Below, in pieces: positions 11,060-59,999 of a stretch of 64,000 nt of DNA. Source of the stretch: Octopus bimaculoides (Eukaryota); NCBI RefSeq assembly GCF_001194135.2, contig NC_068993.1, positions 53,089,547 to 53,153,546 on the forward strand. The letters are read 5' to 3'. A program made the translations under genes and the position numbers. Within the stretch, counting starts at the first letter, position 1; each line of letters begins with the position of its first letter. Below the pieces are notes generated by a model. The model had not been told where the DNA came from. It made no database searches and worked only from the letters and a program-made list of their open reading frames with translations.

Positions 11060-11464
11060 NNNNNNNNNNNNNNNNNNNNNNNNNNNNNNNNNNNNNNNNN
11101 NNNNNNNNNNNNNNNNNNNNNNNNNNNNNNNNNNNNNNNNNNNNNNNNNNNNNNNNNNNNNNNNNNNNNNNNNNNNNNNNNNNNNNNNNNNNNNNNNNNN
11201 NNNNNNNNNNNNNNNNNNNNNNNNNNNNNNNNNNNNNNNNNNNNNNNNNNNNNNNNNNNNNNNNNNNNNNNNNNNNNNNNNNNNNNNNNNNNNNNNNNNN
11301 NNNNNNNNNNNNNNNNNNNNNNNNNNNNNNNNNNNNNNNNNNNNNNNNNNNNNNNNNNNNNNNNNNNNNNNNNNNNNNNNNNNNNNNNNNNNNNNNNNNN
11401 NNNNNNNNNNNNNNNNNNNNNNNNNNNNNNNNNNNNNNNNNNNNNNNNNNNNNNNNNNNNNNNN
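11060..11464. other. Assembly gap (N); further gaps at 24101-24287 and 41451-41460
   Basis: N runs, each flanked by TA/CA microsatellites. Confidence 1.
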
Positions 11465-15794: not shown

Positions 15795-16922
15795 CTGTAC
15801 CAAGCAAAAGTCTTTGGCTACTTTAAACTATTGTAAATTTTTACTAATTGCCAACTTATAAGTGACTGTTTCACATTGCACTTTTTGCAGATGAAACATT
15901 GGCCCTGTTGGAGCTATTTTCATACCTAATCATTATATTTTGAATGAGAGGGGAAGATGTGAGACAACCGCCAAAAATGGCCATGCAAAAGTTTTCAGCC
16001 ACCTCACATAAACCAATCAAGATACAGTGTTTTAAAACAGAAAAATGTCTATAATGAAAATTTATTACATAATGTTCATCTCAAGAAGTTCTAAGTGAGA
16101 ATTTGTCAGAAGGCCTTCAGGAAAGCAAAACGACCTACATTACATGATGAAAACAGTGAAGTTTGCGGGTAAGAGTTTGATGTTTTGGGAATACATAAAA
16201 AGTGATGGTTCAAGAAAGTTGGTTAAAACTGATGGTAACTTGAAAAGTGCCAAATACATCCAATTGCTGAAGGACAATTTGATACCAGACTTGGATGAAG
16301 GTGAAATTTTTCAGCATGACGGAGCTCCATACCACAGATTGGATGCAACACAACAGAATCCGGCTGATGAAGGTGTTACCATATTGAAAGATTGGCCAGT
16401 TCAGAGCCCTGACTTAAATATCATCAAGCAAATGTGGATTGAACTAAAGAGAAGCATTCATCAGAAGAATCCACACAACCTTGAAGAGTTGTGGGAGCTC
16501 AGCCACAGAGAATGGTATCTCATACCTGTGAAAATGGTGAAGGATTTGTACACATCTCTTCTCAGGTGCATTGAAGCAATTATTCAAGCTAATAAAAGCC
16601 ACACAAAATATTAACAATGTACAGTAACTTCTTGAAATGAACATTATGTAATAAATTTTTTTTATAGACATTTTTCTGTTTTAAGACATTGTATCTTGAC
16701 TGGTATATGTGAAGTGGCTGAAAACTTCTACATGGTCATCTTGCATCATCCCCTTTCATTCAGAACCCCTATTACAAAATATAATGATTAGGTATAGAAA
16801 TGACTCCAACAGGACCAGTGTTTCATCTGTAAAAAATGCAATGTGAAACATCCACTTATAAGTTGGCAATTAGTAGAAATTTACAATACTTTAAAGTGGC
16901 CAAAGACTTTTGCATGGTACTG
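15795..16922 (+). mobile_element. Internally deleted Tc1-family DNA transposon with ~260-bp TIRs
   Basis: TIRs at ~15795-16052 and ~16662-16922 (CAGTACCATGCAAAAGTCTTTGGCCAC..); ORF 16144-16614 has FQHDGAPYH and WPVQSPDLNII; DNA-binding domain and first D are missing. Confidence 0.9.
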
Positions 16923-24100: not shown

Positions 24101-24287
24101 NNNNNNNNNNNNNNNNNNNNNNNNNNNNNNNNNNNNNNNNNNNNNNNNNNNNNNNNNNNNNNNNNNNNNNNNNNNNNNNNNNNNNNNNNNNNNNNNNNNN
24201 NNNNNNNNNNNNNNNNNNNNNNNNNNNNNNNNNNNNNNNNNNNNNNNNNNNNNNNNNNNNNNNNNNNNNNNNNNNNNNNNNNNNNNN

Positions 24288-27586: not shown

Positions 27587-27837
27587 TTAAGCTTGACAAC
27601 AACTGTAGCTAGATACTGGAGTTGTCTCCCCAGAGGGAAACGCTTTGTTATTATGAGGCCGAAGTTCATGAGCTTTAGCTTGTTTCGTCAGTTCTCGTGC
27701 AATATCAAAAAATAACTTTTCAACATTGTCAGCTTCTTTTGCTGAAGTTTCCAAGAAAGTCATCTCGTAACGATTTGCAAATTGTTCTCCTATTGTAGTA
27801 GGTATTTCTCTGCGATTTATCTGATCAATTTTGTTAC
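27587..27837 (-). CDS. RAB30: Rab30 last coding exon (GNKID...ETSAK...SCCQA*)
   Basis: 251 nt, phase 1 acceptor TTTGTAG; NKID and ETSAK motifs; C-terminal CC prenylation motif; the four exons sum to 606 nt = 201 aa plus stop. Confidence 0.96.
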
Positions 27838-30800
27838 CTACAAAGAAAAAGAAAAAAAGAAAAAACAAAAAATCAACTCTTATACAATAAAGCTATTTTT
27901 CTAAATTTAGTAGCATAAAAAATATTTCAGAAGCAATATGAAATACACAAGACATTCTTGAGCAGCCAGCATTTAATTCAAAAGGAATTATAATACCAAA
28001 TCATTATTTGCAACCACTTCTTTATCTCTTGTTTGTTTCATTGTTTGTTACATTGTTTAACGTCCATTTTTTCATACTTGCATGAGTCAGAGTTTATTGA
28101 GATTTTCAATGGCCAGATATGCTTTTGCAGAATATTGGAAATGAATTTCACTCATGTATGACAACTATGACACAATGTCAAGACAATGAGGCATAAACAT
28201 GCACATGCACACACACACACACACAACCTCCAATATATGTTGTATATGTATGTATATGTTTCTGTGTGTATGTTTGTCCCCGCCAACATCGCTTGACAAC
28301 CAATGCTGGTGTGTTTACATCGCCCGTAACTTAGCGGTTTGGCAAAAGAGACCGATAGAATAAGTACTAGGCTTACAAAGAATAAGCCCTGGGGTCGATT
28401 TGCTCGACTAAAGGCAGTGCTCCAGCATGGCCGCAGTCAAATGATTGAAGCAAGTAAAAGTGTACAACAAAACTAAATACTGCCATGTATTCAGCTGCCT
28501 TATTCCCATTACTGTCAGTAATACTCCAACCAATAAAGGTCACTGGCTTTGCTCTACAATTTTCAGACTAATCAACACCTCACCTAAACCCTTCTTTCAC
28601 ACTTTTAGCCTGCCCTTTAATATGCTTAGTTATATTGTATAACTCACATTCCTTTCACTCAGCACTAGATGGAATCCTAAATTCCATCCATGAACATTTT
28701 TTTTTTTGTCCAGTCTTCTTCAACACAGCAACAACTGAATATAACCTCTCTGACACTTCAGTAATAAAGAGAAACAAAGGTTATTTAGCAGCTGTGTCAT
28801 AAATAAAGCAGTGGTTTCTTTGTAAACAAATCTGTAACATGAAAATTTAGATTAATATTTTTGTTGCTCACTCATTCAGAACTATATTGTGTATACTTTA
28901 ATAGGATTATTATGATAGTTTTTTATTCTAAAATAAACTGAATTCATTTTGACAATGTTGTTTGTTAAAAGTCCTCTTATCATCCAAAAATACTGTCATC
29001 AAATATGTCACCTTTGACTTCAATGCTGCTTATGAAGGCCATGTTTTTACCCCTTGTATGGAATAGCTCACTATAATTCTATTCTTTTAAATCAATTGAT
29101 AACTTTTTGTTAGCTTTTAGGACCATATGCAAAGAAACAATAGTTAACAATGAAGTTTTTGTACTGATACTTAAACTAGATGTCATTTGTTGATTGAAGA
29201 ACATATTTTTTTTTCAATGGTAGTATTGTTCTGTTAATGAGATTGCATATATAGATTTAAAGAATTAAAATTTAAAATGATAACAATCTCACAATTATGG
29301 CAGCGTCATTCTTGATTTCCATGTATGAAGGAGCTATTATCAAAAATAAGATTAATGTGACAGACTAAGATAATCAGAAAACAGTCATCACCACATTGTC
29401 ATATTTCATTTTGAAACTTTTACTAACAAATTCATAATCATCTATTTGTGAAGAGAAGTCTCTATATAATAATCAATATAAATGTTGGTTGACTGGTTGA
29501 TTTCTCCAGTCATGTTTTACATCAGAGAGAGAGAGAGAAAGAGAGAGAGCAAACAAGAAATGCTGAGAGGTGCAAGATGATTGGAGAGAAAGAATCAGAG
29601 GAGGGGTGGAGAATGAGGAAGAGAGGGAGTAAATGACAGTAGTTATGGGAGGAGTTATACAAATGAGGAATTTGTTTTAATTTTATTTTAAGATAAATAT
29701 TTTTGCTTGAACATTAGTATTGATTTCATCATTTTGTATAAGTAGTCAAAAATTTGATAAAAGTTAAATTATATTTTATTGTATGTATGCCATGCTTCCT
29801 GATATTAGCCAGGGTGGTAAAATATACGCTTCAAAAGTCATGTCATATGTTGGGTAGCACTTTAGTAATTTAATATTCATTAAAGAATGAATCAAGCAGT
29901 TACATAAAAAGCTTTGCCCAAAGAGCCTGAAGTTATACCCAAACCTTACTATCAGTAAGAGTCTTCAATGTCTAGTAGTACTAGGAAAATAATCTTCCCT
30001 AATTTAAATAAAAAATTACGCCAGATACTCCTTGGATAGTGCTATCAATGACTGAAAATGGTAAACTAACAAAATATAATGTACAATTCCAGTATACTAA
30101 TTGCACCAATGTAAATTGACAGTATAAATAACCAGAAACAGAAGACTGTGTTTTACTTCAGTGGCTCAGTAGAAAATTGTTCTACATGACAGAACTTAGT
30201 ACTGAAAGTGAAAACACAAACAAATGACTATATAAATAAAATGACTATATAAATAAAACAAGTGAACAATTAATAGAATTGCTATCATTGCTGAAATGAA
30301 AGATAAAATAAATGGTAAAATTGTAAAATATATACTAAAAAAAAAAACACAATTAAACCTTGGGAGAGGCATTATGCTGGTAATAAACACACGCACTGGT
30401 TCAGTCCTTTATTAATTTATATAGTTTTTTGTTAAATTATTTCATTGCACTCTTGCAATCTCTTCAGTAACTTGTCTCTCCACTTCCATTTATTTTGAAT
30501 ATATGATCTGGCGTTGTTTTGGCGTTGTTCGAAACTGTTTAATTGTATTTCTTTCAACACACGTATCCACATCAAGAATCTTGCACACGAAATACACATA
30601 CGAAATAAAAAATTTAAAAAAACAATAAACATGGCCAAAGCAAGTAGCATATCTATAATGACTAATGAGAAATAAATTGTATATGATTGATTAGATAATT
30701 TGAACATAGTAGAGAGTTTAGGACCACTGAGTTGAAAAAGTAAAAATGAAAAAAGCCAGTACATTCAAGCTGTTAAAAATTACATATATGTATATGTACA

Positions 30801-33815: not shown

Positions 33816-35160
33816 AAATCATGTATAAACAAATCATGTATAAATAAAAACGTGCCGTTCCAGATATGTGAGTACTACACCAAATTTGCATGCATTTCAA
33901 CCCTGTAGGAATCTGGTTACTGAAGTACAAAATATTTCTTTCTTTAAGTGAAAGCCAGGTTGCCTTCAAGAGTTTTGGTTAGAAGCTTTCAGAAAGATTG
34001 GAAACATAAGTTCAAAAATAAGTAATGAAAAGAGAACAGGTAATTGTTTATGAGAAGTACTATTACTGATTACAAAATTGCAATAAGTAAAGCTACATTA
34101 TTTTCACAACACATTCTCTAATTAGAGTTTAATGGTAATTAAAATCTTGTTGGAGAAGATAGGAGTTCTCACAGAAGAAATAAATGGATATATATGATTG
34201 TTGTTACATGTATGCTATTATATGCAATGAACAGGGAGATGAGTTTAGAGAAAACAAAAGAGTAACTGCTTACATCATACCCATAAATATCAATGAATTT
34301 AGTGAAGAATACAAAAATAAAAAGGTTATTGGTTAAGAACAAAATTGGGAGAAAACAGACATTTATAAGATTCTAAAGATAGTAGAAAAGAGTTTTAAGG
34401 AATCAGTATCAACAGATGCTGATAGTATATATCTGATAAAGATACATAGAAATTTGGATATAAGCTACTGAGAGGCAGACATCATCATAATCATTTTAAT
34501 GTCCTCTTTTCCATGGTTGCACTGGTCAGACAAATATGTTTAGGCAGAGTTTTTCTATAACTGGATGCCCTTCATGTTGCCAAACCTGAACTGTTTCCAA
34601 GTGAGATAATTATCTCCCAATCTGCTGAACAGCTCCCAACTCAAACATGCTTTTTTTACATTGAGAAATGGAAGCAAAAACATTTGTTAAAGATTGTTTC
34701 GTTTACAAAAATCGTACAACATGTCAAGACATGCCAGAAAGAAAAGATATCCTTTTGTTGATGGATTGCAAAGCAATGATACTGGCAGGAAGCCACTGTT
34801 TACAAACCAGTGAACACAAGGGAAGTCCATCCACCCACTCACTCACTCTCCAGGTTGAGCCACTACTTCTCTGCATTGGGAGGTCACAGCTCTGACACTA
34901 TGGACATATGATTAGAAGTAATAGGAAAAAATCATACAATGAATTCTTGAAACCCAGCCATTTGGCTGGAGACCTAGGAGTACACAAATATTGAGATAGT
35001 TGGATAATATTCATAGTCTCAGTTGGCCACGTTTGGGAATCCAGATGGAAAATGTAATGATGGTTGCTTCTGATAGGATCCTATATAGGAGGTGTCTGAG
35101 GACTCTACCCTCACGAATAGTGGATGGAGAAGATGGAAGTTTTAAAAACACAATTCTTAC

Positions 35161-35244
35161 CTTAACTTTATCCCCATCAATTTCAACACTTTTTATCATG
35201 AAATCTACTCCTATAGTAGCTCCCTGACCAGGTGGAAACAATCC
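35161..35244 (-). CDS. RAB30: Rab30 coding exon 2 (GLFPPGQGATIGVDFMIKSVEIDGDKVK)
   Basis: 84 nt, phase 0/0, CTTCAG acceptor, GTAAGA donor; switch I GATIGVDF. Confidence 0.95.
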
Positions 35245-35939
35245 CTGAAGTGAAGAAAGATAATTTTGATAAATGTTTATTAAAAACAATCCACGATGTC
35301 AAAAATAGACAACAATCAATGCAAATAAACATCATATCTTGTAAAAAAGTTGAATTTGGGAGAAATGCTGATGGTGAACACTGGCAAATAGTGTTGCAAA
35401 AAATTTAAACAGTGTACCCCGTGTAAATTATAGAAGCACAAGGTATGGGATGACAGGTAGGTCAACAGATATGCAGCAGATGCACAGAGACAAAAAGCAT
35501 TAAGAACTCACAAAAAATAGATTTTCTAAAATGCTCAGAAGGCTCTCTGAAAGTAGTTGATAGCTTTTATTACTTAGGTGACTTAATTATCAGTAGGTGT
35601 GATTATTTTTGGGAAAACTTTATATCAAATTTTTGGGAGCTGTGGTGCTTGAAGAGAAGATAATAAATCATGGAGATTGTTTTGATGATTGTCAGCCAGC
35701 TACTGAGAATAAAATGAGTTCTTTACAAAACTTGCAGAATGAATTAACAATTGAAAAGTCTCTGAAAGTGTAAAGGGCAACTGTGCAACAAGGGTTGAGA
35801 ATGATTAAAAGCACATAGTGACTAAATATCTCAAGTAAGTTTCAAGTCGTTTTTGATAAAGAGGATTCTAAAATTCTATATGCTCTTTTGTGCCAAGTCT
35901 TGGAAAACGATCATCTGTTGCAGTTATTCTAGAATCCAA

Positions 35940-40000: not shown

Positions 40001-41460
40001 TAAGCTAGGTAAAACAGGAATAGAAAAGAATTACCATTCAATGATAACAATCTGGTTGACTGTCGACTATGTTATTTATGACGAAGTATCAGAGAATACT
40101 TTTTACATCTAAAAAAAAGCCAGTAGACTTTATACTATTAATCTTTAGACTATCCTATTATATGACACTTGGTTAAAAAAAAAAACAAAAAAAACTGTTC
40201 AAGGCAATTTTAGAATGGGCTATTCGCAATTAGGATTTGTAGGGAACAGTGATTCTCCTTGAGTGCTAAAACTAAACCTTTTTGGAGGAATTTAGTTCTT
40301 TCGTAATCCTTTTGCACTTTCCAACTTCAGAGACAACCACTTTCGGTGTTTTAAAAATGGTTAAAAATAATCACTTTTTTCAGCTTACATCATCATCATG
40401 AATTGTATTTTCGCTGATCATTTTTGTCAGAATATTTATTGCTACTTAGCCTCGAGTCAGTCCTGACCAGGCAGGCTTATCATCAAAAGCGTTCCAGCCG
40501 TAATCATCCCGTCTCTTGTATATTTTAGGACTACGCTATCCAACGTGTCTTTCCGATTTCATGATGGTATGAGTAAATGGAGGAAGATCTGGCTGTTATT
40601 TCTAGCATATCGAGCAACTACGAAGACGATCCCTCATCTATCTGTCCCTCACAAATATACATCATACATATACATATTTGGTCCCATTACACATTTGTTT
40701 ATTTCCATTCTAATGTCCTCTTTTTTGCCCTTGTAGAAAATAAAGTAGTCGTCATCGTCATTAGATTTCCCTCGTTAAATTTTCGGCAACAGAATTATTA
40801 TTACCATAAATGTCCATGTGAACCCTGAAGAAATTCTTATAAATCAATATATGTAATGTATTCAACATTACCAAACATAAATGTATTGTTTATTGCAAAG
40901 CCTTATTCGTCGTTACCATTATATCACAACCACTTCATCCCGAAAATACCGAAAAGACACAACTACAAGTTAACGTGGAAGCCTCTATGTGGTAATTCAA
41001 CCCGCTAAAAACAGCATCCAAATCTCTCTAAATCACACATTTCTGCATTATGAAAATGAAAATAGATATAATTGATAATGTAGAAATATATATATATATA
41101 CACACATACACAATAAAAAAAAAAGAGATTCAAATAGGAGGGTCACAGAATGCTTTTCATCATAGGTCTGTCTGCTCGCCCATGGTAAAACCTATGGTTA
41201 AATAATAAATTCTAAAAGAAGCCTTTTTTTTAATATTTGTATTATGCATGTCACAATAATTCAGTGGTATTCATATTTAGAATCAATTACCTATTTAACT
41301 TCAATCTGATATATATTTTAGGGTTCGAAGTTTATAATAATACGACCTATACTACTGGGTTATTTCTGAATGTGGACGAGCTCTATACTGCACTACCACG
41401 TTCCTAACGAAATACAACATAGATAACTATATATATATATATATATATATNNNNNNNNNN

Positions 41461-42539: not shown

Positions 42540-43060
42540 CGTTAGCTTCCGGTTTTTTTTAACATTTCTATATTTGACGTTATAATTTTCTGTTCCTTTT
42601 GAATTTAAACTAGAATAAAAATAAGAATATTTTGTTTTTGTCAATATTTTTTTAAGATCATGAAAATATATTTCTTTTCTCGCGAACTAATTTTCAATCA
42701 CATATGTAGACTTATTTACCGCAAAAACTGTATTAACTGTTCGTTAATTTGACTGAACTCAATATATTTTAAAATATCGATAAAATTTCATTATAAACTG
42801 CATGAATTCTTAAACATTTTATCTTAAATAGAAAAAGAAGTAGAGGCGAGTATTATTCTATTAAAAAAGACATATAATGATTCCAAGAATTCAAGAGAAC
42901 TTCTTTCCTTAAAATTTATTTCTTTACAATGGAAGGTATTTTGAATCACGTGTGCAAACAATATTGACCAATGAGAACGTCAGTCGGTGATTCTGCGTAA
43001 GCGTGAGCTGTCTACGTCATTGTCCTGCGTCTCTTAGCTGTTACTTCGACTTCTCTTGAA
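42540..43060. promoter_or_regulatory. Shared (bidirectional) promoter region of Rab30 and PCF11
   Basis: CpG-enriched relative to flanks; CTTCCGG ETS-like 42546-52, TCTCGCGA 42678-85, TATCGATA DRE-like 42775-82, CACGTG 42947-52, CCAAT 42968-72, ACGTCA half-CRE at 42977-82 and 43014-19; lies between divergent genes. Confidence 0.6.
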
Positions 43061-43259
43061 GATGTCTAACAAAATTATAGCTTTGTAAAGAGAACAGCAA
43101 CACTAATATATCGCTAGAAAGTAATTTTTACAGGCAGGAAGTTTTTTTTTTTATATTTTTCCAATATCTATTTTTTATGGAGCAGTTCTGAAGTTGTAAA
43201 ATTCTCTACATCAAAACCTTCAACAGAAGATTCACTAGACTCTATATATATATGAGAAA

Positions 43260-43418
43260 ATGGCTGATGCCGAAGAAGTGATAGATAGCTACCGTTCGTC
43301 TCTTGCTGACTTGACGATTAATAGCAAGCCACTAATCAGTATGTTGACCATGCTTGCCGAAGATCATATCCAGTATGCCCAACACATCGTTCAGCTGATC
43401 GAGCAGCATTTACAAAAG
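43260..43418 (+). CDS. PCF11: PCF11 exon 1 (CID N-terminus MADAEEVIDSYRSSLADLTINSKPLISMLTMLAED...LQK)
   Basis: AAAATGG start context; matches the PCF11 CID motif LxDLTxNSKPxIxMLTxLAE; 159 nt; GT donor at 43419. Confidence 0.93.
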
Positions 43419-43915
43419 GTTTCGCTTTCTACATTTTTTTTTTAGGATTCTATCAATTCGCCATCGGATTTCAATCAATATTTTCCTTTCTTTTTATGTT
43501 TTTCCGCGACCGCCATCTTTGGTTTGTGTGATTGAAATTTGAGTGCGAAATGAAAGCTTCTCTATTATAATTCTACTTATGTGTTTGTGTTTTTACTTTT
43601 TCTTCTTCTTCTTCCATTATTGTATTGTGTTAAATTTCTTATTCCTTCTGTTTTTAAATGCGAATCATATAAGTAAATTCAGTAGTAACTCCTTCATTGA
43701 ATTCATAATATAGGTCAGTTAATGTTTGTTACATGACCTCTAGTTGTAGGTTTTTTTTTTCCTTTTCGTATATTTTATTTCAACTGATTTATATTTAGTG
43801 GAACGTTTAAGCTGTCATATGATCATTTTATTATCATTATTATAGGTTCAAATATTTCTTAATGCTTAACGTTTTAAGTCAATGTAAGACATAGTCTATA
43901 TAGTTTGACGAGTTT

Positions 43916-44297
43916 ACTCTTTTACTTGTTTCAGTCATTTTGACTGTGGCCATGCTGGAGCACCGCCTTTTAGTCGAGCTAATCGACCCCGGGACTTATT
44001 CTTTGTAAGCCTAGTACTTATTCTATCGGTCTGTTTTGCCGAACCGCTAAGTTACGGGGACGTAAACACACCAGCATCGGTTGTCAAGCGATGTTGGGTG
44101 GGGGGGACAGACACAGACATGCATGTATATATATATATACATATATACGACAGGCTTCTTTCAGTTTCCGTCTACTAAATCCACTCACAAGGCTTTGGTC
44201 GACCCGAGGCTATAGTAGGAGACACTTGCCCAAGGTGCCACGCAGTGGGACTGAACCCAGAACCATGTGGTTGGTAAGCAAGCTACTTACCACATAG
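43916..44297 (-). mobile_element. tRNA/CORE-type SINE family B; further copies at ~9890-10050, 10075-10500, 11915-12065, 28255-28460(+), 32620-32930, 38925-39130(+), 48960-49140
   Basis: Minus strand GTGGTAAGTAGCTTGCTT..GGGTTCAGTCCC (A/B boxes), then GGCACCTTGGGCAAGTGTC (CORE-like), internal (TA/CA)n tract and shared tail. Confidence 0.85.
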
Positions 44298-45470
44298 CAA
44301 CTGATTTATATTTAGTGGAACGTTTAAGCTGTCATATGATCATTTTATTATGATTATTATAGGTTCAAATATTTCTTAATGCTTAACGTTTTAAGTAAAT
44401 ATATCAATGGACGACATTATAGTCTATATAGTTTGACGAGTTTGTGTAAAACTGAAGAATTAACAATCTGAAACTTGTTATGCAAACATAAGTAATGATT
44501 CAAAATGAAATACGAAAGGCAATTTTTGTAGAAGCTAAAACAGGATGGTACACACACTTCGTTTGGTAGCAGTGATGGAAGTAATGTATTCATAATGTTA
44601 GGCATACTGATGAATTTGAAAAGCTTAAACAAGATCGATTCTTTTTCTATTCGTTTTAGCTTTAACGTTTTAGAAAATTGCAAATCCTCGTGATTACAAA
44701 AGAATGTCTCAGTTCTATTTCAAGGTGTTTTGTATTGCTCTATGGTTGTTTATTTATTTAGATTAACGCATTTGACATAACAGATTGGTGTCCCACCCAA
44801 CTCTGCTACCCTTTAACTGTTTTTCAAAATGCTTATTTTATACTGAGTTTACGCTTTCGGTAGTAATTTTTGACAAAATTAGAAGCAAAAATTGGAGGGG
44901 GGTGCATTGGCACCCCTCCCTATTACCGCCAATTTCTGTAGCTTTAGCATTTAATTAATTTTTTTTCCATGATTTATGTTTGAAACCTTTACATTCGTAA
45001 CCCATGCCCTCGAAAACGGATTTCCGTACAATTTTATTTATTTATTATTTTTTTAAACATAATCTACACCCCGGTAAGCCTCTCTACAAAATCCCTTTTA
45101 AAATATGCTGTTTCAATTTGTAGTTATTCCTTATTTTCATCTTCCCTCTTCTCTTACTGCGAATTTTAGTGTGTTATCGTTATTAAATGCAATTCATTTA
45201 CTTGTTTTAGATAGGATAAATATTTAAAGTTAATTTCCGAGGAGTTTTTAGCTATTTTGGAACGGCGTGTTCCTAGTGTACTTAAATCTCTGAATTTTGT
45301 GTGTGTGTGTGTATTCAATTTACTTCTATTGCCAATATTACTCAATAATGTCTTTCGCATTATTCTAAACTTTAATATACATGTACTTCGTGGAAGGAAT
45401 CGCGTATGTTTTAGTATTCTACTAAGTTCTAACATACAATATGGTGCCATTGGAGTCGAATATTTAAAAC

Positions 45471-45507
<37 letters not shown>

Positions 45508-48500
45508 GATAATGATTCTTGCTAGTGTGCAATATTTTAACCACACTGAGCCTGAATTTTTATCTTCGTTTGTATGACTACATGTGTAGTATATATATAT
45601 GCATCCACAAATATATACATGATACAGCCTGAGGTGGGAGTAAAAGTATATTTTAAAAGTAATGAAGGATGCTTTTTTTTTTTTACTCGTTATTACGCTG
45701 CATTTTTAAAAAGTATAATTTAATCCATCCATTTAATGTTTATTCGTAATCATTTCATAGATCTTTACAGAATATGTAATATATGTCTACCGTTGTAGCA
45801 GTTGTCACTGTTGAACGCTTATGAAATCCAAGCTTGTACAACTGTGACATACAATGGCTTGTGCAGGGTGTACTAGCCCGAATACATTTATCCGTTTTCT
45901 AATCTGTTAGATAAGTTTTTATTCCGAAACCAAAAAAAAAAATTACAGGAGATAACGTCAGTAATGAATTTCGGAATGGGGCATAGCATATACTAGACAA
46001 AAACCGATTTTTCGATTAGCATAATTTTATTGGGTTAATGTTGTACACTATGTGAAATTTAGTTTCATCCGTCTCTAGTTAGTTTTCCTTTGTATTTATT
46101 TTCCCTTCGACAACCAAACCACCTCCATATTCTCGAAACTACTCCTTGTTTAGTAGTAACTGGGCGGGGTTTCAGTTAATAGACCTTTCACTCTCTCCTT
46201 CCCCGAATTTTATTCTAATTAGCATGGTTGTTTCCCTTCTATCACAATAGAAATAACTCGTAGAAAACGTCAATTCTGTGTGTGTGTATACACGATGTAG
46301 TCTATGAAGTAATTGAATAAGGTACTCAATGAAAACATTTAAGTAATACTTCAGTTTATGGGGCCATTGTTTTATTATATAACCTAATAAAAGCATTGTG
46401 GTGTGTGTGTGTGTATTTATTTATATATATATAATAATAATAATAATACTAAATACGTCATTAAAGGAGTGGTTTTAGAGTTAAATGGTGGATTTGTACA
46501 ACCATAACTGCAATGCAAGATTTGTTTTGTTTTTACCATTATTTTCTGGAAGGCTTCAAATTTGTCTTTAAAAATTGTACATTTGTTTGTAATAACATAC
46601 TAACTCTCCCTTTGCTTGCCATAAGAGGTTCGTCATCCAAAAATATTTAAAAGAATCTTCCGATGATCTTTTTAATCTTTGTACATATAAAATGTCGAAC
46701 ATCATACTGGAGTATACTGAAAGCGAACAAATAATCGTTATAATTGGCAGTATCAAATAGCAGGATGCCCCTCCCCCTTTTTTTTAATAAGTTATTTGAA
46801 AAGAAAGTTTTGTCTGCATAGCCTTTTTTTAAAGGTAAAGTTTTCTTTAATCTACATCTTACGGTTATTATGTAAGCTTGAAAAATTATTTAAAAGTTGT
46901 TCTGTATATAAAAGTTAAATAAAAGATATGGAAATACCTAAAAAAAAAAAAAAAATTGTATTTGTCACTGCTGATTATTGATTATTTTGATTTTTAGTTT
47001 GTATCACTTTGTTCGATATTTTATGTACAAAGATTGAAAGGTTACAGTTTTTCTAAAGAAGTTTGTCAAAATACATTGACTGACTCGTAATTCTTTGGAA
47101 AAACATGAAGGGCGAAAATGTATTCTCTTACACAAAATTGCTAAATTGCTATAACGAAATAAATTTTAATTTGAATAGCTTGAACCAAGTTGTCATTTTA
47201 AAAATAATTAACCTGGTAGTAAGTTTGAGTGAGAATGGAAGAAAAATAAAAGCTTTAGTTTTGGTTGACAAAATCCAGCCATATGCATGCTTTTTTTCTT
47301 CATTTCACTCTCTTTTTCGATATTCATTTGTGGATTTGATATATTAAAGCACATACTAAATTGTCATTCAGTCCCTTGGTATGATGAAGATCAAAATCGA
47401 ACAAGAGGTAAGCTCAAGCTCTACTAGCCTACGATCTTGATTTAGTTTCTCTTAAACTTATTTTACACAGTTCAAGATCAATGATTGGGAGAATGTATAT
47501 CTTAATCATATTGATGTCTTAGATTGCTGCAAGATATATTTGATTGTATTGTCTTGGCGTGTTCCTTGCTTTATCTGCTCCAGGTGGCTTTAGTTTTGTG
47601 TAACTTGTCTAGATAATGTTCTGGCAAGTAAATTGGAAATAATTTACTATCTTACAGGAACAACAAAATGTTGCTGTTTCATCTAGTGTTCTTTTTTTTC
47701 TGTTGCAACAAGAAGTGTTACAACCTGTTTGAGTAAATCCAGTTAAATGTTTCACTGGTATTGTTTTCTATGTGTCAGGTAATAATCTGGTAGCAGTGTT
47801 TCAAATTGTCATAGTAGTTGGGTAAAGCAAAACCAAAAAAAATACTTTGAACACATGCCTTTGTCTCTAAAAACAATATTTCTATCTAAATTTCAGAAAA
47901 CATCTTGGTAACTAATCTGCTTTCTTTGCAGGAAATCTTTTGCCTGCTTGTCTTGTGTGGACTGACTTAATATTGAATGGTTTCTGTGCCAATTCTCAAA
48001 TTTATTCTGTACTTTTAGGCTTAAGAGAAATTTAAAAGTGAACTTAATTGTCAATTTTGGTTAAGCATTTATACTTTTGAATCCATACATTTATATGTGA
48101 TTAAAATGGGGGGAGGTTAATTGCATGGCAAAAAGTATACATTAATATTATAAGTTAAATACCAAGGTAGCATGAGGTTATGCATATTGGTTAACTGTGG
48201 TCTTAGAATGTTAGGTAGATGTATTTTAGTATCTTCATGTGTTAGTGCTGTTGGGGTTCAAAAATACAGGTCTATGTAACAGTTGTTATGGACTTAAAGT
48301 GAACATTTGATTCTAGATTAAAAACCAAGTATAGTGGGTGATTTGGGTGTGTCTTGGCTTTCGAATAACCCATGCTTTGGAAATAGTTTTGTAGAACTTG
48401 TGGAAATGTTTTTCACAACAATTTTCTGTTCACATTTCGAATATTTGGTTGTAGTTAAACTCTAGGCTTTTTTTAAAATGTTAGTCTTCTTTGCAAATAT

Positions 48501-51500
48501 ATGTTGAATCATTAGTTTTGTCAGCTTTTCCCTTATTTCCATTGATGGGGGGAGTTTGAGATAGTGTTCTACAGCTGGCACTGATTTTTTTTATTTTTTT
48601 AGAGTAAGGTACTATACTCTGTGACATCATACAAATTTACAAGTCGCTATACTTTTTGTGTTGGTCATGAAAACCATCTCTGCCAGCTGAATGATCTCCT
48701 AATTGTTTTAACATTTGTTTTTCCATGCTTTCGTGAGGAAGAGATTTCTACAGAGTCAGGTGTCCTTTTCGTTTCTGAGCAGAGTAGTAAGCACTCCCAA
48801 TCTACTGAACAACAAACAGTCCAGACAAGGTTATACTGAGCCTTTTGTTTACAGAGATCACACATGTCAAGGAGTCCAACAGGCTTTCACATTAAACTGC
48901 AAGCAGACATATTTATGAACTGTGTGGTTTGTTTCCAGTCAGTAAACACATGCGAAGACTGGGGAAATACTTATCTATATTTCATTCTACGTCTACCAGT
49001 TTCATTCAAAAGGCATTGACACCAGCCAACAGCAACCACAGTTGGGCAGGATCACTAACCACGTTTTGAAGCATGATGAAAAGCACTTGCCCAAGGTGCC
49101 ATCCAGTGGGAGTTATCCAGAAATCATATAGTTATGAAACATTCTGAACCAGAAAGCACTGCTTATAATATTTTGTGGTGTATATGTGTTTGTCAGTGAT
49201 TGTTTATTAGAATTAACTCTGGAAAATATTAACTAAATAACCATTTGTGTCCATCACATGGTGATGGTTTTTGATATTACTCGGCTGAACTCTAATTTAA
49301 CACTTAATTAATGAATATTAATACATGCACCATATTCCACTTTACCTACTTATTAACACACCAAACCAAAACTGAAATACATTCAACTATTGAATTAGGC
49401 TTTCAGATTACTTAGATAACTGTTTTGTGACATTAACAGTTCCTGAAAATATCACTGCTAATAACTTGCTACATGATATTGAATAATCAACACATTATTC
49501 TATTAATATTATTGAAGTATTTACTTTGGTCATTTTAAATGTTGCTGGTGTTTTGAGACAATTTTATTGAGGGGAGATTTCCTTGCACTTTCTTTACAAC
49601 TAGGTGTACTCGACTGTTTTGAGAGCAATGTTTCTTGAACAAGCTGCTGGCACTTGGCTTGTCTCTTACCCTATAGACACATTCAGGTCATTTGTTGGGG
49701 TCCACAGTTTTCATCTGCCTCAACATTTGTATCCATGGTTTATATAGTTATGTATAAACCCCTTGGTAGCCACTTTAAAATGTTAGAACAATGGTTTGTT
49801 TGGAATGTCAAGGATTAGAACCTTTTGTCCAAATCGGAGACTGCCTTTCTAATGCCAGTAACTTAAAATCCACCCAGTTCTTGCTGAACCTTGATAAGTG
49901 ATGGAAAAGTGACTCCTGATAAAAAGGTCAGTTGACCACAGAAACCATGCTGAAAATGGAATCTCTAAGTAAAATATGTACATTTCAAGCTATCTAGGAC
50001 CAAACACTGAGTAAAGAAGATTCTGTAGTTCAGCTCCTTTGGTAGCATTGGTGTAATGAAACAGTCTGTATGATATGCTACAACAAAGCCAAAAGTATTA
50101 TCAATCAATAACTTATCCCCTTTAGACTTGCACTGCCTAGCTAATTGTTCATGTCATCTTTATTGGAATTAGTATTACATATATCAACTAACACTTAACC
50201 AATTTCCGTGGCTTCGTGTTTGTAGTTGTGGGCCTAGGCTCAGTACCATGCAGCCCACATTCTATATATGTTCTTTATGCAGTCTACCTTGTGCATAGAG
50301 CTTGAGAAACTTCGGATGCCTTTAAGTCAACTAGGTATGTGTCTATGTATAGAGATAAATATTAAGTTACTATTTCCTTGATGATAAAGTTGAAACTGTT
50401 TCTAATAAACGTAAAGGGATCATAACTTTGATATTGTTCATTTGAAGTGTGTGTGTGAATTCTAGACAAGTTAAGGGAGGTAAGTACACACTTGAATGGT
50501 TCCACTCTGGGTTATGGTTTTAGTATCAACCATTTAACAAAATTGAAATTTCCAGAACTAGATTAAATTAGCTGTGTTCAACAAATTTTATCCTTAGTAA
50601 AATTTGAATCATTTGGGTGTGTATTTCACTCTTGCTTTTTGTGAAAGCAATATGCATTTTGTATGTGTGTATTAAAACCCTTAGTTTTGATGAATGTTTC
50701 AGTAATTTTTGTGGTCATGTGAACTTCTGTGTATGGCATGATGGCGTATATGACAGTAATATTCTTATTTTGTTGAAAATATAAATTCTTATGTGCATTT
50801 GTGGATAAGGGGTTACACTTGTTTTTGTCCAAGGAGTTTGGATTTTGTATGTGTTAATACAAATACATATGTAAATTAATAAACTCAAAACTTATCTTAA
50901 TTACACTTGTGTGTAATTTTCTTTTTTCTCTTTTTTTTTTTTTTCTTTTTTTCCAGACAGGATGGTGACTCAGTAGTAGAGTGCTGGCAGTGGGGGGTTT
51001 TATTATTACTATTAGTATCACAAGAATGAATGCATTAATTAGTTTATGAAGTACAATAATTACATATCAGAGGTATTGATTGATTATACTGTAAATTTTA
51101 CCCAATAGATTATTCATGAATGGCTAACTCTCCATCCAGTAAATAATTGTTCATAATTTTAGTCTTTGGCTTGATGAAGAAATTTTCTCCATTGAAATTA
51201 TTTTATCATATATAGCTCAAAATGTGATTTCCATTTACTAAGGAATCCTATTATTTAACCATGGGTTATTTTGAAAATATCTCAACAAAATGTTAAATCA
51301 GTATCTAGGAAAAGGTAAAATCGAGTATTAATACAAATTAGGAACTTTTCACTGTTTGTAGTAAAAGTACCCTCCTTGGACAACTCATGGGCTATCTGTT
51401 CTATTAATAAAAAGTATGTCCAAATATATTGCTGATATATTAATAACTTGGCTTTGAAACAGCAATAAACAAAAGTTTGTAATTATTGGTCACTTGAACC

Positions 51501-53039
51501 TTAAATTTACTGTCTTGAATTACAGTATCGGAACAAAAAACCCGTCAAGCATAATGCGTGTGTCTGAGCATGTAATGCAGATCAAAACACTAATAAATGA
51601 TTAATGGGTTATCTTTGAGTAGAAATAAAATGAATTTCATTTGAATTGGCTGCTTTTACACTCTCTTACCCTGAGAAGCTACATCATCTCAAGCTGGATT
51701 CAGCAAAAGTATCAAGAAATTTCAGCTGGCGTTTGTTGAACAGTTAGAAACTGTATTAGTTTATAAGAATAAATGATTGCCAGTCAATATGTCTTGCCTT
51801 CTGAGTACTTAACATGCAAGTTTGTTTTGTTTTTATCATAAATGAAGTTTCAATTTTGAACAGATGCAGGTTTAGTTGATCAAGTTGGCTGGCAGCATGT
51901 TTTTCAAAAATTTCTATTTTTAAATAATTAGCTTACTTTTGATGCTAATTAATTTTTATTTTAATATATTGTGATTATAAAATTGAAGTTTGATATTTAT
52001 GTCGCCAACTTTCTCTAAACTTGTTTCTTTCACTCTTGAGAGGTTCCCAAGTCAATTAGATGGTTTACTGTGAAATGAATGTACTTTATAAGAGTTACTG
52101 TAACAACAACTCTGAATAATTTTATGTTTGCTGCTAATATTGGTAATTCGTTTAATAATACAAAATCTGATATAAATTAACATGTATTTTAATTGCAAAT
52201 CATAAGATTGTTTGTTTTGTGTTGTTACAAAACTCTTTGCCATCTATTTTGGGAATCTTTATTAGGTTTATTTTGCCATAAACTGGCTAAGTTGTATCAA
52301 TGGAATCCATTCATTTTGCAAAATTACGAAGAAACCCTGTTGTGATTCACTGGACAAGAATCAGTTTCCATCAAATAGTGGAGCTTGAAGAAGGAGCATC
52401 AAAAGAAAAGCTGTAGGAATGAAGATGCTACACACTTTCTTAAATGAAGATGGTTTTCTGATTATGCATTTACATATGAAATACAGGGCGGTGTCATTTC
52501 TTTTACACCGTGCTATAACAAACATTAGAAATTGATAAACAGGTGGAAAACATCGCTCCTGCTGATCATTGATATTCTTGGTAATAAATACTTGAAAAAT
52601 ATTTTTGTATCCTGGATTTGTCATTCTTTGTTGGCCATTAACTAGGTCATTTGTGACCTAAGGAATGTATCTTATAGTAAGCGTCACGATTCCTTCCAAA
52701 GCACCTGTTAAGTTCCATTCTTTTGGATGTCAGGTAAGAGTTTGGACATTTCTTCATACTCTTTATATTTCAATTACATTTTTAAAGTAAGCTGTGTAAT
52801 TTGGCTCCTTGCCAATATTTAACAATTATTGACATGTGAATTATTTCAGTGTATTTTCAGAGTCACGGCTTACTCAAAACACTGAACTTGGTCACACTAG
52901 TTCATTTATACAAACTGAATAACCAAGCATTCGGTTTTTTTCCCTCTCCCTCAGAACTTGAGATTATGGTGATTTATTTTGTATTCACATTTCCAAAATA
53001 TCATATTTCATATTTTGAGTCTGTTTTTGTTCTTTTCAG

Positions 53040-53168
53040 GTGAAACCATCACAGAAATTGCCAGTTCTATATTTGATTGACTCGATAATAAAGAATCTGG
53101 ATGAGTGTGAATATCCTCAGCTTTTCAGCAAAAATATAGTTGCTATATTTTGTGATACTTTTGAAAAG
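53040..53168 (+). CDS. PCF11: PCF11 exon 2 (VKPSQKLPVLYLIDSIIKN...FEK)
   Basis: CID motif KLPxLYLxDSIxKN; TTTTCAG acceptor, GTTAGG donor; 129 nt, phase 0/0. Confidence 0.95.
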
Positions 53169-53619
53169 GTTAGGATGAGTTGCAGTGATTTTTATGTAGA
53201 TTTCTAAATCTTAATAGTCATATGGGTGGGTTTTGTGAAAGGTAATTTGGATGCTCTTTAAGTGAATAAAGTTTAGTCTTTTATTTTTATTTTTTTCTCC
53301 AATTACGAATACCTCTAATTTTCAATTCTTTTGTATTGATTGCTTTATTAAAGAATATATTTCAATGATTTTGTGATATGTTTTGTACATCAGATGTTTT
53401 ACATTGAGCAGAGAGCTTAAGTTATTGATTGTTTAGTATGTAAAGTTACTTGGCTATTTTTCTATTTTGAGTTGTTAGTACTGTGCCAAGTAGATTTGCT
53501 ACACATTAATTCATTTGCTGATTATGTTTGTAATGGAAAAGGTTTCCGAAACGTAAGAAGATTGACAGACTGACTATTGGGTTTGTATTGCTAAATATAC
53601 AGGTTTTTTTGGCGTATAG

Positions 53620-53799
53620 GTGGATGAAAAAACCAGAGGATCCATGTACAAACTTAGACAGACTTGGCAGATGTTTTTCCCTAACCAGAAACTATATGCA
53701 CTTGATATGCGTGTGAACATGTTGGATCCAGCTTGGCCCATCATCGCAGATCCTCCTGGACAAGGAAACATACATGTGAACCCAAGATTTTTAGTCCAG
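53620..53799 (+). CDS. PCF11: PCF11 exon 3 (VDEKTRGSMYKLRQTW...LDPAWPI...IHVNPRFLVQ)
   Basis: CID end with KLRxTW, DPAWPI and IHVNPxF motifs; 180 nt, AG/GT boundaries. Confidence 0.95.
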
Positions 53800-55368
53800 G
53801 TAAAAGATATCCTGCCAGCTCCAGTTGATGAATTTTTACCCCCTTCCCTTAGTTATAATAAAAGATTAGTCAATTCCATTTTTACTAACCTATTACGTAT
53901 TGCCTTGTCATGTGAGGAATGTTTCGGTTCTTCAGAATTTTGTTGCAGTAAATTAGCTTATTGTTCATTCTTAGAGAAATGCTTTCCCAAATTTTCATTT
54001 TTGCTTCATGGAAATTTTTTATATGTATATTTTTTTTACTGTGGTTGCATTTAATTTATTAATCCATAATTTATTCAGAATCATTCATTAGTGTATATGT
54101 ATCTGTTTTATGAGGTCAAAGCTTCATAACAGTTTGTTAGGTTCCCCCCACCCCTGGGATCATGTAGGAAAACACAAGTTGTCGCGATTTTATTTATGAA
54201 AAGTGTGTTTTTTTAATTAGCCTATTCTTTCATTGAAACTCCATTTTGAGGGTGTTTATCTGGTAAAATGCTTAGTTGTGGCCATTTGGTTCTCGGAAGG
54301 TACTACTACAGCAGTAATGTACTGGGGTGAGTCACAGATTTTTGTGACCTTTTAAGTAGGCGATTTAATCAATAAAATATTTATGAATAGGTAGATGTAG
54401 GTTTTTTTTAAGAGTATAAGTGAAAGGTTGTTTCACTACTCTTCAGAACATACTGTTTTCTTTTATTAGCTTAACTATTATTATGCAGTATTTGCCATGT
54501 AATGTTCTGGTGCATCTAGAATCAAAGAATTCTTCATTTGATTTTGTCATTAGTAAGGGGTTTGAATTCATATTTTTCTCTGTAAATTTAACTTTGTTTA
54601 GAATTGATTTCAGGCATTTATACTCTTTGGTCACCATGGTAATAAGTTAGGTGTCTTTGTTTTGTTTGTTTTTTTTTTACTGCATAAAGCCAGGAAAATT
54701 TTTTCTTATTCAGAAGAATGTGTATACAAAATAAGTCCTGTCATCATCCAACTTCCCTTTCCCATTTTGTCTGCTGCCTGTTTTTTTTTTTTTTTTTTAA
54801 TTTTATGTATTTATATATATATATATATATATAGTTTGCTTCATATTTTAGCCATCTTAAACAGCACAATTAAGATTTAGAATTCGAGCTAATTGAATAT
54901 CTCATTGTCCATTTTCATGGAAATAAACATTTCATGTTCATTTCAGTTGGTTTTAATAGACTTATCTCATTCAAATTAACTGGTTTGATTTTTTTCCAAG
55001 TAGTATCCTTGTTTTCATTTCCTCCACTTAAGTATTTGAAAGGTTGGGCAGTAAGTTTGTTTTTGAAAGACACGATTTAAGTAGTTTTTAGAATACTAAG
55101 TAAAGCCATTTTAATAAATGGTAAACATATAGCATTGTTTCTTGTCTAACAATGGTTTATAAAGGATGGTAGTAATAAAAATTAGGTATTTTCGTTTGTG
55201 ATTATCTTAATGTCTTTATATTTATTACATTAGCTACTGTCCATACAAATTTGAAACAGCAAGTTTCACAAATAAGATCATTGCTAATTTCAATAAGATT
55301 TGACATTTTATTAACCTATCGAATGTTCAGTAGTCAGGCAGCTAATTAATGCTGTCTTTTCTGAACAG

Positions 55369-57524: not shown

Positions 57525-57916
57525 GTTAGTTAATAATTTTTGTCTTAAGCAGACATGGTTATTAAAATTTGTTTTATCATCTGAGTCACAATGTGCATGT
57601 TGCACCTGTCTGAAATCTAAATTGCATAAAGTCTGGGGATTTATGTAAAATCTGATTTCATTTGACATTATCCCTTTTGATCTTAAAGTGAACTAAAAGC
57701 CTTTCATTGAAATTGTGTTTAATTTATCTCCCAAACACCAGCTTAATAATAGTAATTTTACTGAATCCATCATTTATTAAAATAAGTTTTATTCACTTGA
57801 TATTTTACATCAGTATATTTAAAAAGTAATGCCACTATAGTTGTTCTCTATGCAACCATGTTTATGATCATTCTAATAGAATTGTCTTGTAATAAGTATT
57901 TTATAATACTTTTCAG

Positions 57917-59907
57917 TGATTTATTTGGTAAAGAAGATCAAGATTACAGAGTACCACCTAGCAGAATGAGTGATCACCACATCCCGTACATGAGAAGTGG
58001 TAGTCACTCAGGTTGGGCAAAGTTCAAAGCAGATCATCCTGATAACTTTGCAGATGAAAATGATGCATGTGCAACTCCAAAGGATATTGATGAGCGATAC
58101 AAAGATGTTGATATGCGTTGGAATTCAGGTCAAAGGCCTGGCTGTTTGCAGAATACATTTAAATCTTCATATTCTGGAAGAGTATTAGATTCTGCTACGA
58201 GAAATGAACATACTAGCTTACTTATAGGTGCAGCAAGACTAGCTGAGTCAGGCAAATTATCTCATGAAGAGCATCAGTTAGTTTTAAAGCAAATTGGTAA
58301 TTTGCAGAATATTAATTATGATAAGTCTGGTAAACAGCTTGATCATTATGAAGATGGTCAAAGTTTTGATCAGAGGTCCCATGACATTAAAAACTACCAT
58401 GTACATGATCAGATAAAATCAAACAAGTGGGTAGCAGAAGTAACTCCTGAGGTTAATTCCCACAGTCCTCAAAGAGATACATCCCATTTATTTCTCTCTA
58501 ATCATCATCAAGATGCTGATATGAGAAATCAAGTTAACGAAATGCCTCCATGTAACGTCCCACTTTCTAACCAACCACATCCAGTCCACTCTAATAATGC
58601 ACCTTGGGGTCCAGGTGCATTAATGCAATCTGATTTGGTAGATCCACGATGGAAAGGAAATGCAGTTGTAATGGATAGTGAAATGTCCGAAGTTGTAATT
58701 GACCATAAACCTTATGAAGTTGTACTCAATGGAAAGCGTCGAAAAATTAGGTTGCATGGAAAAGTATTTGAAATGTTTGCTGATGGTAGAGAAAGAGCTA
58801 TATCAATAAACAACCACTTATATTACCGATTTGGTGAGGATATTAAGGATGTACAAATTGACGGTCGCTGGCACAGAATACATTATCAGGGCCAACCTAA
58901 ACATTTATGGATTGATGGACAAAGTTTTGAGGTACGAGTAGATGCACCACCAAGGCGCATTGTTCTTAACAAAGCTGAACACTTTCTACACGTTGATGGA
59001 AGAGATATGATGATTTTTATTGATAGAGTAAAACAGGGCATATATGGTGGACCGCCAAGGAGTATATTTATTAACAATATTTGCCATGAAATAAGGTTTG
59101 ATCCTCCACCAAGGCAAATTCTGATTGATTGTAAACAATGTGAATTGAAATTGAACTGCCGGATACCTTTTGTTGTTATTGATGGCAAACCACATGGTAT
59201 CAGGTTTGATGGTCCAGATCGGGAAATTATCATAGACGACACTCCATACATGGTTCCAGTTGATAAACCAATTAAAATTCGTCTTGGCAAACGTCCTCAT
59301 TTTCTTGCATTTGGTGGCCCTGCACATGAAGTTATTATTGATGGTAAATGGTTTGAAGTTCGATTTGAAGGTCCACCAGTAGAAATACATCTTGGTAACA
59401 GAACACACACTGTCATGCTGAAAGGGGCCTCTCCTACAGTAAAAATTCTCGGAGAGTTGCCTGTTACCCCTGAACCTAACAGACCACAATTTAATTTTGG
59501 TACTTCAAATATGTTTCCTCCGACACCTCTAGTTAATAACTTTAATCGACCAAGAGTACCAGATAACTTTCAGCCAAGACCTCCACATTGGGATGTTACT
59601 TTTGAAAGGAGACGAAATCAACCAGATACAATGGCAATGATTCGACCATCTCATTTCCCACCAGAAAGACCTTTGGAAAGTTTAAGGTTCCCAACAATAT
59701 CTCCCATCATGGGGTCAACTTCTGTACAACCACTTCCAGCTCCCAGTTTAATCAATAGTGGCCAGCCACCATTTTATCCCAACATGGCAGGAACTATCAG
59801 TGCAGTCGCTCTCCCACCACTACCAACCCTCCCTCCAGGTTTAGCTCCAGTTCCAACACCTGCATCTGTTGCTCCACATCAGTTTCCACAGATTACTTTT
59901 ACAACAG
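57917..59907 (+). CDS. PCF11: PCF11 exon 6 (DLFGKEDQDYR, 18-aa repeat domain, Pro-rich region)
   Basis: 1991 nt, open; TTTTCAG acceptor; DxDxR motifs; RFEGP-like repeats; G|GTTAGT phase-1 donor. Confidence 0.9.
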
Positions 59908-59999
59908 GTTAGTATTGTTTATGTTAATTATTTTTACATAATTATAAAAAGGTATTATTTAAATTTCATCTTGACTTTTTCTCCTTATATTTCTTTTAG

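Follow-up and report, generated by a model that had tools for sequence, protein, structure and literature searches.

Does the PCF11 gene of an octopus carry, within its first intron, a poly(A) site by which the gene could limit its own output? PCF11 is a limiting 3′-end processing and termination factor in vertebrates, where the poly(A) site in its intron 1 is a textbook example of self-sensing. To our knowledge, this autoregulatory loop has been described in vertebrates only. Our literature searches found no link of PCF11 to octopus, nor, in the relevant papers, of PAS1, the vertebrate PCF11 site, to invertebrates. The question was raised by a preliminary description of the Octopus bimaculoides sequence analyzed here (NCBI RefSeq assembly GCF_001194135.2, contig NC_068993.1, positions 53,089,547 to 53,153,546, forward strand). 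This stretch of 64,000 nucleotides is called the window below, and all coordinates are window positions unless a contig is named. The description proposed that a cluster of five AATAAA hexamers in PCF11 intron 1 forms an autoregulatory poly(A) site. We favour, with about even confidence, a narrower answer, namely that a functional, conserved intronic poly(A) site would be centred on the last of these hexamers, at 51768. It is conservation, and not the counting of AATAAA, that makes the case for such a site.

The cluster had been assigned to intron 1 of PCF11, and this assignment was correct: on the + strand, exon 1 runs to 43418 and exon 2 begins at 53040. The parts of the gene on which the argument depends are as follows; the slash in splice-site sequences marks the junction.

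43260 to 43418, + strand: coding part of PCF11 exon 1 (MADAEEVIDSYRSS...QHLQK), the start of the CID domain, read as an open reading frame (ORF) whose homologues carry Pfam CID
43416 to 43424, + strand: 5′ splice site of intron 1, AAG/GTTTCG, with 0 of 4 matches to GTRAGT at +3 to +6
43419 to 53039, + strand: PCF11 intron 1, 9,621 bp (A 0.30, T 0.38)
53040 to 53168, + strand: PCF11 exon 2 (VKPSQKLPVLYLIDSIIKN...FEK), 1.27 kb 3′ of the candidate site

The coding part of exon 1, read from the ORF at 43260, runs from MADAEEVIDSYRSSLADLTINSKPL to QHLQK and encodes the N-terminal end of the CID domain of PCF11. Exon 1 showed 89% identity to residues 1-57 of PCF11 from the cuttlefish Acanthosepion pharaonis (P0032), and the alignment of this cuttlefish protein to the window spans 43260-63621. 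Exon 2 starts with VKPSQKLPV at 53040, the next coding piece (VDEKTRG..) lies at 53620, and the large PCF11 exon spans 57858-59909. The position of intron 1, after ..K and before V, is common to octopus, the limpet Lottia gigantea, fish, springtail, and psyllid.

The intron was then compared with those of other cephalopods. With the large exon (57858-59909) as the query, two cephalopod relatives were retrieved: L001, a 340-kb ENA contig with 60% identity in the large exon, and L002, a 6-kb Logan contig with 93% identity there, which ends short of intron 1. The exons of L001 showed 87-98% identity to the cuttlefish protein, compared with 82-87% to the CID exons of the window. Because they are closer to the cuttlefish protein, L001 was taken to be decapodiform and the window octopod. 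The divergence of these two lineages dates back some 270-300 million years. L001 contains the final 4.9 kb of intron 1 together with exon 2 (L001:4897-5031) and exon 3. Other searches were made with different queries. The CID query gave no cephalopod locus at an E cut-off of 1e-20, which is too strict for single exons, and a concatenated query (exon 1, exon 2, and nearby ORFs) gave no cephalopod match. For the Acanthosepion PCF11 protein, a look-up yielded no contig.

Blastn of window positions 43000-64000 against L001 returned the coding exons and, apart from these, one single block at 51710-51832 (78% identity over 132 bp, E=2e-23), which was extended to 51671-51863 by a more sensitive blastn (72% over 219 bp, E=6e-26). 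The core of the block reached ~90% identity, compared with ~50%, the noise level, in the 200-bp flanks on each side. This is the one conserved block in the 4.9 kb of intron 1 spanned by L001, and none was found in ~5.8 kb of other introns. The block is also syntenic, lying 1.27 kb 5′ of exon 2 in the window and ~1.7 kb in L001. Non-coding alignments between Euprymna scolopes and O. bimaculoides are rare genome-wide, with 528 on homologous and 6182 on non-homologous chromosomes (PMC13652810). The core was also sought in JGI metagenomes by pattern scans, which gave 0 matches, and then 3 chance matches without PCF11 exons. The block and its parts are listed below.

51671 to 51835, + strand: conserved non-coding element, aligned with L001:3093-3276, the sole non-exonic match in ~21 kb
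51752 to 51755, + strand: conserved UGUA, 16 nt 5′ of the hexamer, inside the invariant CTGTATTAGT
51768 to 51773, + strand: conserved AATAAA, the candidate poly(A) signal, identical at L001:3212
51781 to 51790, + strand: predicted cleavage zone with CA at 51781-82 and 51785-86, 8-13 nt past the hexamer, placed by the usual 10-30 nt spacing
51790 to 51803, + strand: proximal U/GU-rich downstream element TGTCTTGCCTTCTG, TGTCTTGCCTTTTC in L001
51820 to 51834, + strand: distal GU-rich element GTTTGTTTTGTTTTT, aligned to GCTTGCTTTGTTTCA in L001 and largely kept
51726 to 51776, + strand: speculative alternative terminal micro-exon, with the conserved acceptor CAG/CTGGCG and the phase-0 ORF LAFVEQLETVLVYKNK followed by a stop

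In the core AAGAATAAATGATTGCCAGTCAATATGTCTTGCCTTCTGAGTACTTAACATG (AAGAATAAAT..AACATG), 47 of 52 positions were identical between the window and L001. The conserved bases are just those that make up a poly(A) site read in the sense direction: UGUA, AATAAA, CA, and two GU-rich stretches. This layout, its conservation, and the weakness of the intron 1 donor are direct observations. The micro-exon is speculative: its ORF would join exon 1 in phase and meets its TGA stop directly after AATAAA, and the corresponding reading in L001 is LAFVGEELATVLVVCKKNK followed by a stop, with indels of 3 and 6 nt relative to the window. Its acceptor at 51726 has a poor polypyrimidine tract (8/20), and the stretch is short. 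Separately, a conserved 7-bp stem of GCUGGCG (51727-51733) with UGCCAGU (51778-51784) would put AAUAAA in the loop. The sole decapodiform change in that stem is G to A, turning G-U into A-U.

The sequence facts on which the cluster had been proposed were all found in place. The five + strand AATAAA (51406, 51464, 51592, 51624, and 51768) and the four TGTA (51357, 51478, 51571, and 51752) are present, the GT-rich run GTTTGTTTTGTTTTT, claimed at ~45 nt past the last hexamer, lies 47 nt after it, and the estimate of ~7 other AATAAA in the rest of intron 1 corresponds to exactly 7 sense copies. Intron 1 thus holds 12 sense AATAAA (5 in the cluster and 7 elsewhere) against 25 antisense copies, a ratio of the kind that the excess of T over A predicts. 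The first 3 kb of the intron (43419-46385) holds no sense AATAAA against 2.1 expected, which is not significant (P=0.12); the same 3 kb carries 14 antisense AATAAA, where composition predicts 7.3.

From local composition, ~0.7 AATAAA would be expected in the 479 bp of the proposed interval, whose width was picked post hoc. The sliding-window density check suggested with the cluster gave a divided result. On the sense strand of intron 1, the probability of at least five AATAAA in 368 bp was nominally low, at 0.004-0.01 under order-1/3 Markov or uniform nulls, but window-wide it was not significant (0.10-0.15 on the + strand and 0.21-0.27 on either strand). Two other clusters in the window, at 30307-30671 (+) and 44749-45041 (−), are equally dense. 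Hexamer density alone is therefore insufficient to carry the claim of a poly(A) site. A repeat or transposon origin of the cluster was rejected, since there is no second copy of it in the window and the only repeat found is a 23-bp tandem repeat at 51278-51328; the conserved block likewise has no second copy within the window. The densest AATAAA cluster of the window is at 30235-30671 (+), with 7 hexamers in 437 bp. It lies within the span of the neighbouring RAB30 gene, antisense to RAB30, and is an example of AATAAA clustering without a link to PCF11.

The individual hexamers were compared by a simple heuristic score for GU/U-richness 8-65 nt past the hexamer, with the 347 AATAAA or ATTAAA hexamers of the window, counted on either strand, as background (mean 7.2). 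AATAAA 51768 scored 15, placing it in the top ~2% of this background. The other members of the cluster scored lower, as follows.

51406 to 51629, + strand: four upstream AATAAA (51406, 51464, 51592, and 51624), with scores of 6, 8, 9, and 9, outside the conserved block

Among these four, only 51624 aligns loosely with a hexamer of L001, which is an ATTAAA. The proposal of a five-hexamer poly(A) site is plausible for 51768, which is kept in L001 within a GU-rich context, but not for the other four, whose context is ordinary and which, like the clustering itself, are not conserved there. Most likely, the four are there by coincidence; at best, they are helpers specific to this lineage. One further sense AATAAA, at 46386, also scored 15, only through the (GT)n microsatellite that follows it (46386-46415); it sits in the part of intron 1 beyond the coverage of L001.

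The 5′ splice site of intron 1 was examined by consensus matching, not by a trained model. In contrast to its 0 of 4 matches, the seven other readable 5′ splice sites of the gene, GTTAGG, GTAAAA, GTTAGT (three times), and GTAAGT (twice), have 2-4 of 4. The intron 1 donor is therefore the weakest in the gene among those read. Homologous donors in three other animals were weak as well; two further invertebrate loci (L009 and L010) came without exon 1, and look-ups of the ant and crab proteins returned no record.

L003:5151-5159: homologous donor of Lottia gigantea, AAG/GTTTTT, weak
L004:5250-5258: homologous donor of a fish (record named Pholidichthys leucotaenia), AAG/GTTTTT, weak
L011:1172-1180: homologous donor of a psyllid, AAG/GTCTGA, weak

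That mollusc and fish share a weak GTTT-type donor is a hint that the arrangement is old, and a poor donor at PCF11 intron 1 may be ancient, with five species sampled and one disagreeing. In the psyllid, an AATAAA is found at L011:1184, 10 nt after the weak donor (GTCTGAACTAATAAAAAC).

From these features, we infer that the site is used, that a short transcript results, and that PCF11 acts back on its own gene. Because the 5′ splice site (AAG/GTTTCG) is very poor and the intron is long (9.6 kb), removal of intron 1 would be slow. The UGUA/AAUAAA/GU-rich element, transcribed 1.27 kb ahead of the 3′ splice site of exon 2, would then offer a time window to the 3′-end machinery. Cleavage, predicted at about 51782-51815, would end the transcript early. 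The resulting short RNA would retain no more of the CID domain than its first 53 codons and would be unable to encode a working PCF11. The short transcript could take the form of a long extension of exon 1, or of exon 1 joined to a short terminal exon that begins near 51726. In vertebrates, PCF11 is limiting for such sites and promotes their use. If the same holds in molluscs, a rise in PCF11 would increase premature ends at the expense of full-length mRNA, giving negative feedback.

This arrangement was compared with the known vertebrate system. The vertebrate PCF11 site consists of tandem AATAAA hexamers, which are conserved, as is the 3-kb first intron that contains them; the site is used in human and zebrafish and responds to PCF11 dose (PMC6458999, Kamieniarz-Gdula et al. 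2019). In mouse, the 5′ splice site of Pcf11 intron 1 ranks at the 3rd percentile, which is held to make the intronic site regulatable (PMC6428223, Wang et al. 2019). The octopus candidate lies in the same gene and in the homologous intron, at the K/V boundary of the CID, as does the vertebrate PAS1/IPA. Its AATAAA, likewise in sense orientation, is part of a conserved intronic block, the donor of intron 1 is very weak, and the predicted product is a truncated CID. Unlike PAS1, where several tandem AATAAA are conserved, only one of the five octopus hexamers is conserved, and whereas the use of PAS1 and its response to PCF11 were shown experimentally, those of the octopus site are predicted from sequence. 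By analogy, the octopus site plausibly works like the vertebrate one.

Similar arrangements were also found in intron 1 of the other species. The fish intron contains UGUA-AATAAA-GU-rich sites at L004:6225 and 6812, and its first AATAAA is followed by GTTTGTTTTATTTTT, which is similar to the octopus distal run. In Lottia, L003:5461-5510 holds the overlapping tandem AATAAATAAA and then TGTTTGTTTCATTTGTGT, 310 nt past the weak donor in an intron of 1.85 kb. With TGTCTTCACTGTTTGTTTCATTTGTGT 10-40 nt downstream of AATAAATAAA, this stretch looks like a complete poly(A) site.

A parallel outside PCF11 is CSTF3 (CstF-77). Intron 3 of that gene is described as a large intron with a conserved poly(A) site, a weak 5′ splice site, and feedback control, the site being of medium strength and controlled by U1 snRNP (PMC3708835, Luo et al. 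2013). The octopus case is alike in the type of gene (a 3′-end processing factor), the conserved (here candidate) intronic site, the large intron, and the weak donor, and unlike in that both the gene and the intron are different. The block further resembles the conserved non-coding elements of coleoids (PMC13652810) in being longer than 100 bp, shared between Octopodiformes and Decapodiformes, non-coding, and syntenic. Those elements are treated as regulators of transcription and 3D-genome structure, whereas the present block has the strand-specific layout of an RNA 3′ end.

Several results weigh against a poly(A) site at 51768. The AATAAA cluster is real, but it is only nominally significant and weak at the scale of the window, and in the decapodiform orthologue on L001 AATAAA clustering was not significant (P=0.17-0.33). 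Conservation was judged from one species pair, the octopod window and the decapodiform L001, and the chance of an AATAAA falling within an AT-rich element of this kind is roughly 0.2. As L001 spans the final 4.9 kb of intron 1, a further conserved site may exist nearer the donor. When the read-through ORF of exon 1 was looked up as an exact protein, no record was returned, and searches gave no cephalopod transcript contig, short-isoform protein, or exon-1 protein. Moreover, the vertebrate intron is 3 kb long and conserved throughout, whereas the octopus intron is 9.6 kb long, with the site 8.3 kb from the donor. The springtail has a perfect homologous donor, ACG/GTAAGT (L005:3151-3159). When both cephalopod elements were compared by blastn-short with intron 1 of fish, Lottia, and springtail, only low-complexity GT-rich strings were matched (E at least 0.04); this missing homology bears on common descent and not on mechanism. 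Finally, conserved non-coding elements of cephalopods are usually read as transcriptional regulators.

The last point leads to the best-surviving alternative, which we regard as possible but somewhat unlikely. According to this, the AATAAA cluster arose by chance, and the block at 51671-51835 is a transcriptional or chromatin element, of the enhancer or loop-anchor type, which merely contains an AATAAA and directs no polyadenylation. The lack of window-wide significance, the similar clusters elsewhere, and the four unconserved hexamers of ordinary context all agree with it, as does the reported enrichment of cephalopod conserved non-coding elements at regulatory loop anchors (PMC13652810). However, conservation is best over the hexamer and the 45 nt downstream of it, in sense orientation, and the UGUA and the two GU-rich runs are spaced as a poly(A) site requires. 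Furthermore, the host, PCF11, is the one gene family with a known conserved regulatory poly(A) site in intron 1, and the poor donor of intron 1 is a separate, independent feature that matches this.

An improbable alternative is that the block controls splicing of intron 1, or is a non-terminal alternative (poison) exon. The conserved AG dinucleotides 5′ of the hexamer (CAAG/ and TTCAG/CTGG) fit such a role, and so do the short reading frame kept in both species with its 3- and 6-nt indels and the 7-bp stem that brackets the hexamer. Nevertheless, no conserved GT donor was found 3′ of the block, the acceptor has a poor polypyrimidine tract (8/20), and the upstream part of the block carries a 10-nt indel. 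The peak of conservation, moreover, lies past the stop codon and the hexamer, which is a better fit to a 3′-end signal.

Quite improbable, in our judgement, is that the block marks the 3′ end of a separate nested sense transcript, a long non-coding RNA or small gene with its own promoter, and not a premature end of PCF11. A conserved poly(A)-site layout would serve such a transcript equally, and nothing links its putative 5′ end to exon 1 of PCF11. Against this, the 3.1 kb upstream that L001 covers holds no other conserved block, nucleotide or translated, and an intronic sense poly(A) site would act on the PCF11 pre-mRNA anyway. As regards a nested coding gene, tblastx against L001 detected only the block itself, in several frames, as nucleotide-level conservation would predict, and no such gene upstream; it was rejected for the stretch covered by L001.

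A small structured RNA made from the block, for instance a snoRNA or an intronic miRNA specific to coleoids, is hardly credible and was rejected, since the block's intronic position and deep octopod-decapodiform conservation are offset by the lack of any Rfam match at E≤1 in the block (43000-54000 gave only a meaningless bacterial sRNA match at 45008), by a folding energy at the level of shuffled sequence (z = −0.03 sense, −0.41 antisense), by the absence of any 80-nt window folding below −16 kcal/mol or z = −1.5 and of any miRNA-like hairpin, by a consensus fold with one compensatory pair only, and by a putative box-D CTGA that is not conserved.

If the favoured reading, a functional poly(A) site at 51768, is true, the antiquity of the PCF11 loop becomes directly testable with existing octopus 3′-end and long-read data. 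It would also give a functional meaning to one of the few non-coding elements common to octopods and decapodiforms. A wider proposal, which we consider unlikely, is that self-limitation of PCF11 through a first-intron poly(A) site and a poor donor (AAG/GTTT..) goes back at least to the ancestor that molluscs share with vertebrates. On this view, the element of cephalopods would be a lineage-specific form of the arrangement, with a possible conserved product of 69-72 residues (53 CID residues plus the tail LAFV..KNK).

The neighbourhood of PCF11 was also annotated. The upstream neighbour, divergent from PCF11 (27587-27868 and 35011-35289, − strand), is a RAB30 orthologue, whose best match among solved structures is Rab-30 (E=2e-26; next match, 3e-13). 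In Lottia, a gene of the Ras/Rab family is likewise head-to-head with PCF11 (L003:515-4024, − strand), and RAB30 presumably adjoins PCF11 in human. The adjacency of RAB30 and PCF11 may therefore be an old microsynteny. Farther upstream, a 156-aa ORF at 16144-16614 (+ strand) resembles, by eye only, the C-terminal part of a Tc1/mariner transposase (..DGAPYHRLDATQQ..PVQSPDLNIIKQMW..). Assembly gaps (N runs) are located at 11060-11464, 24101-24287, and 41451-41460, with 602 N in total, and are flanked by (TA)n, (TG)n, and (CA)n microsatellites.

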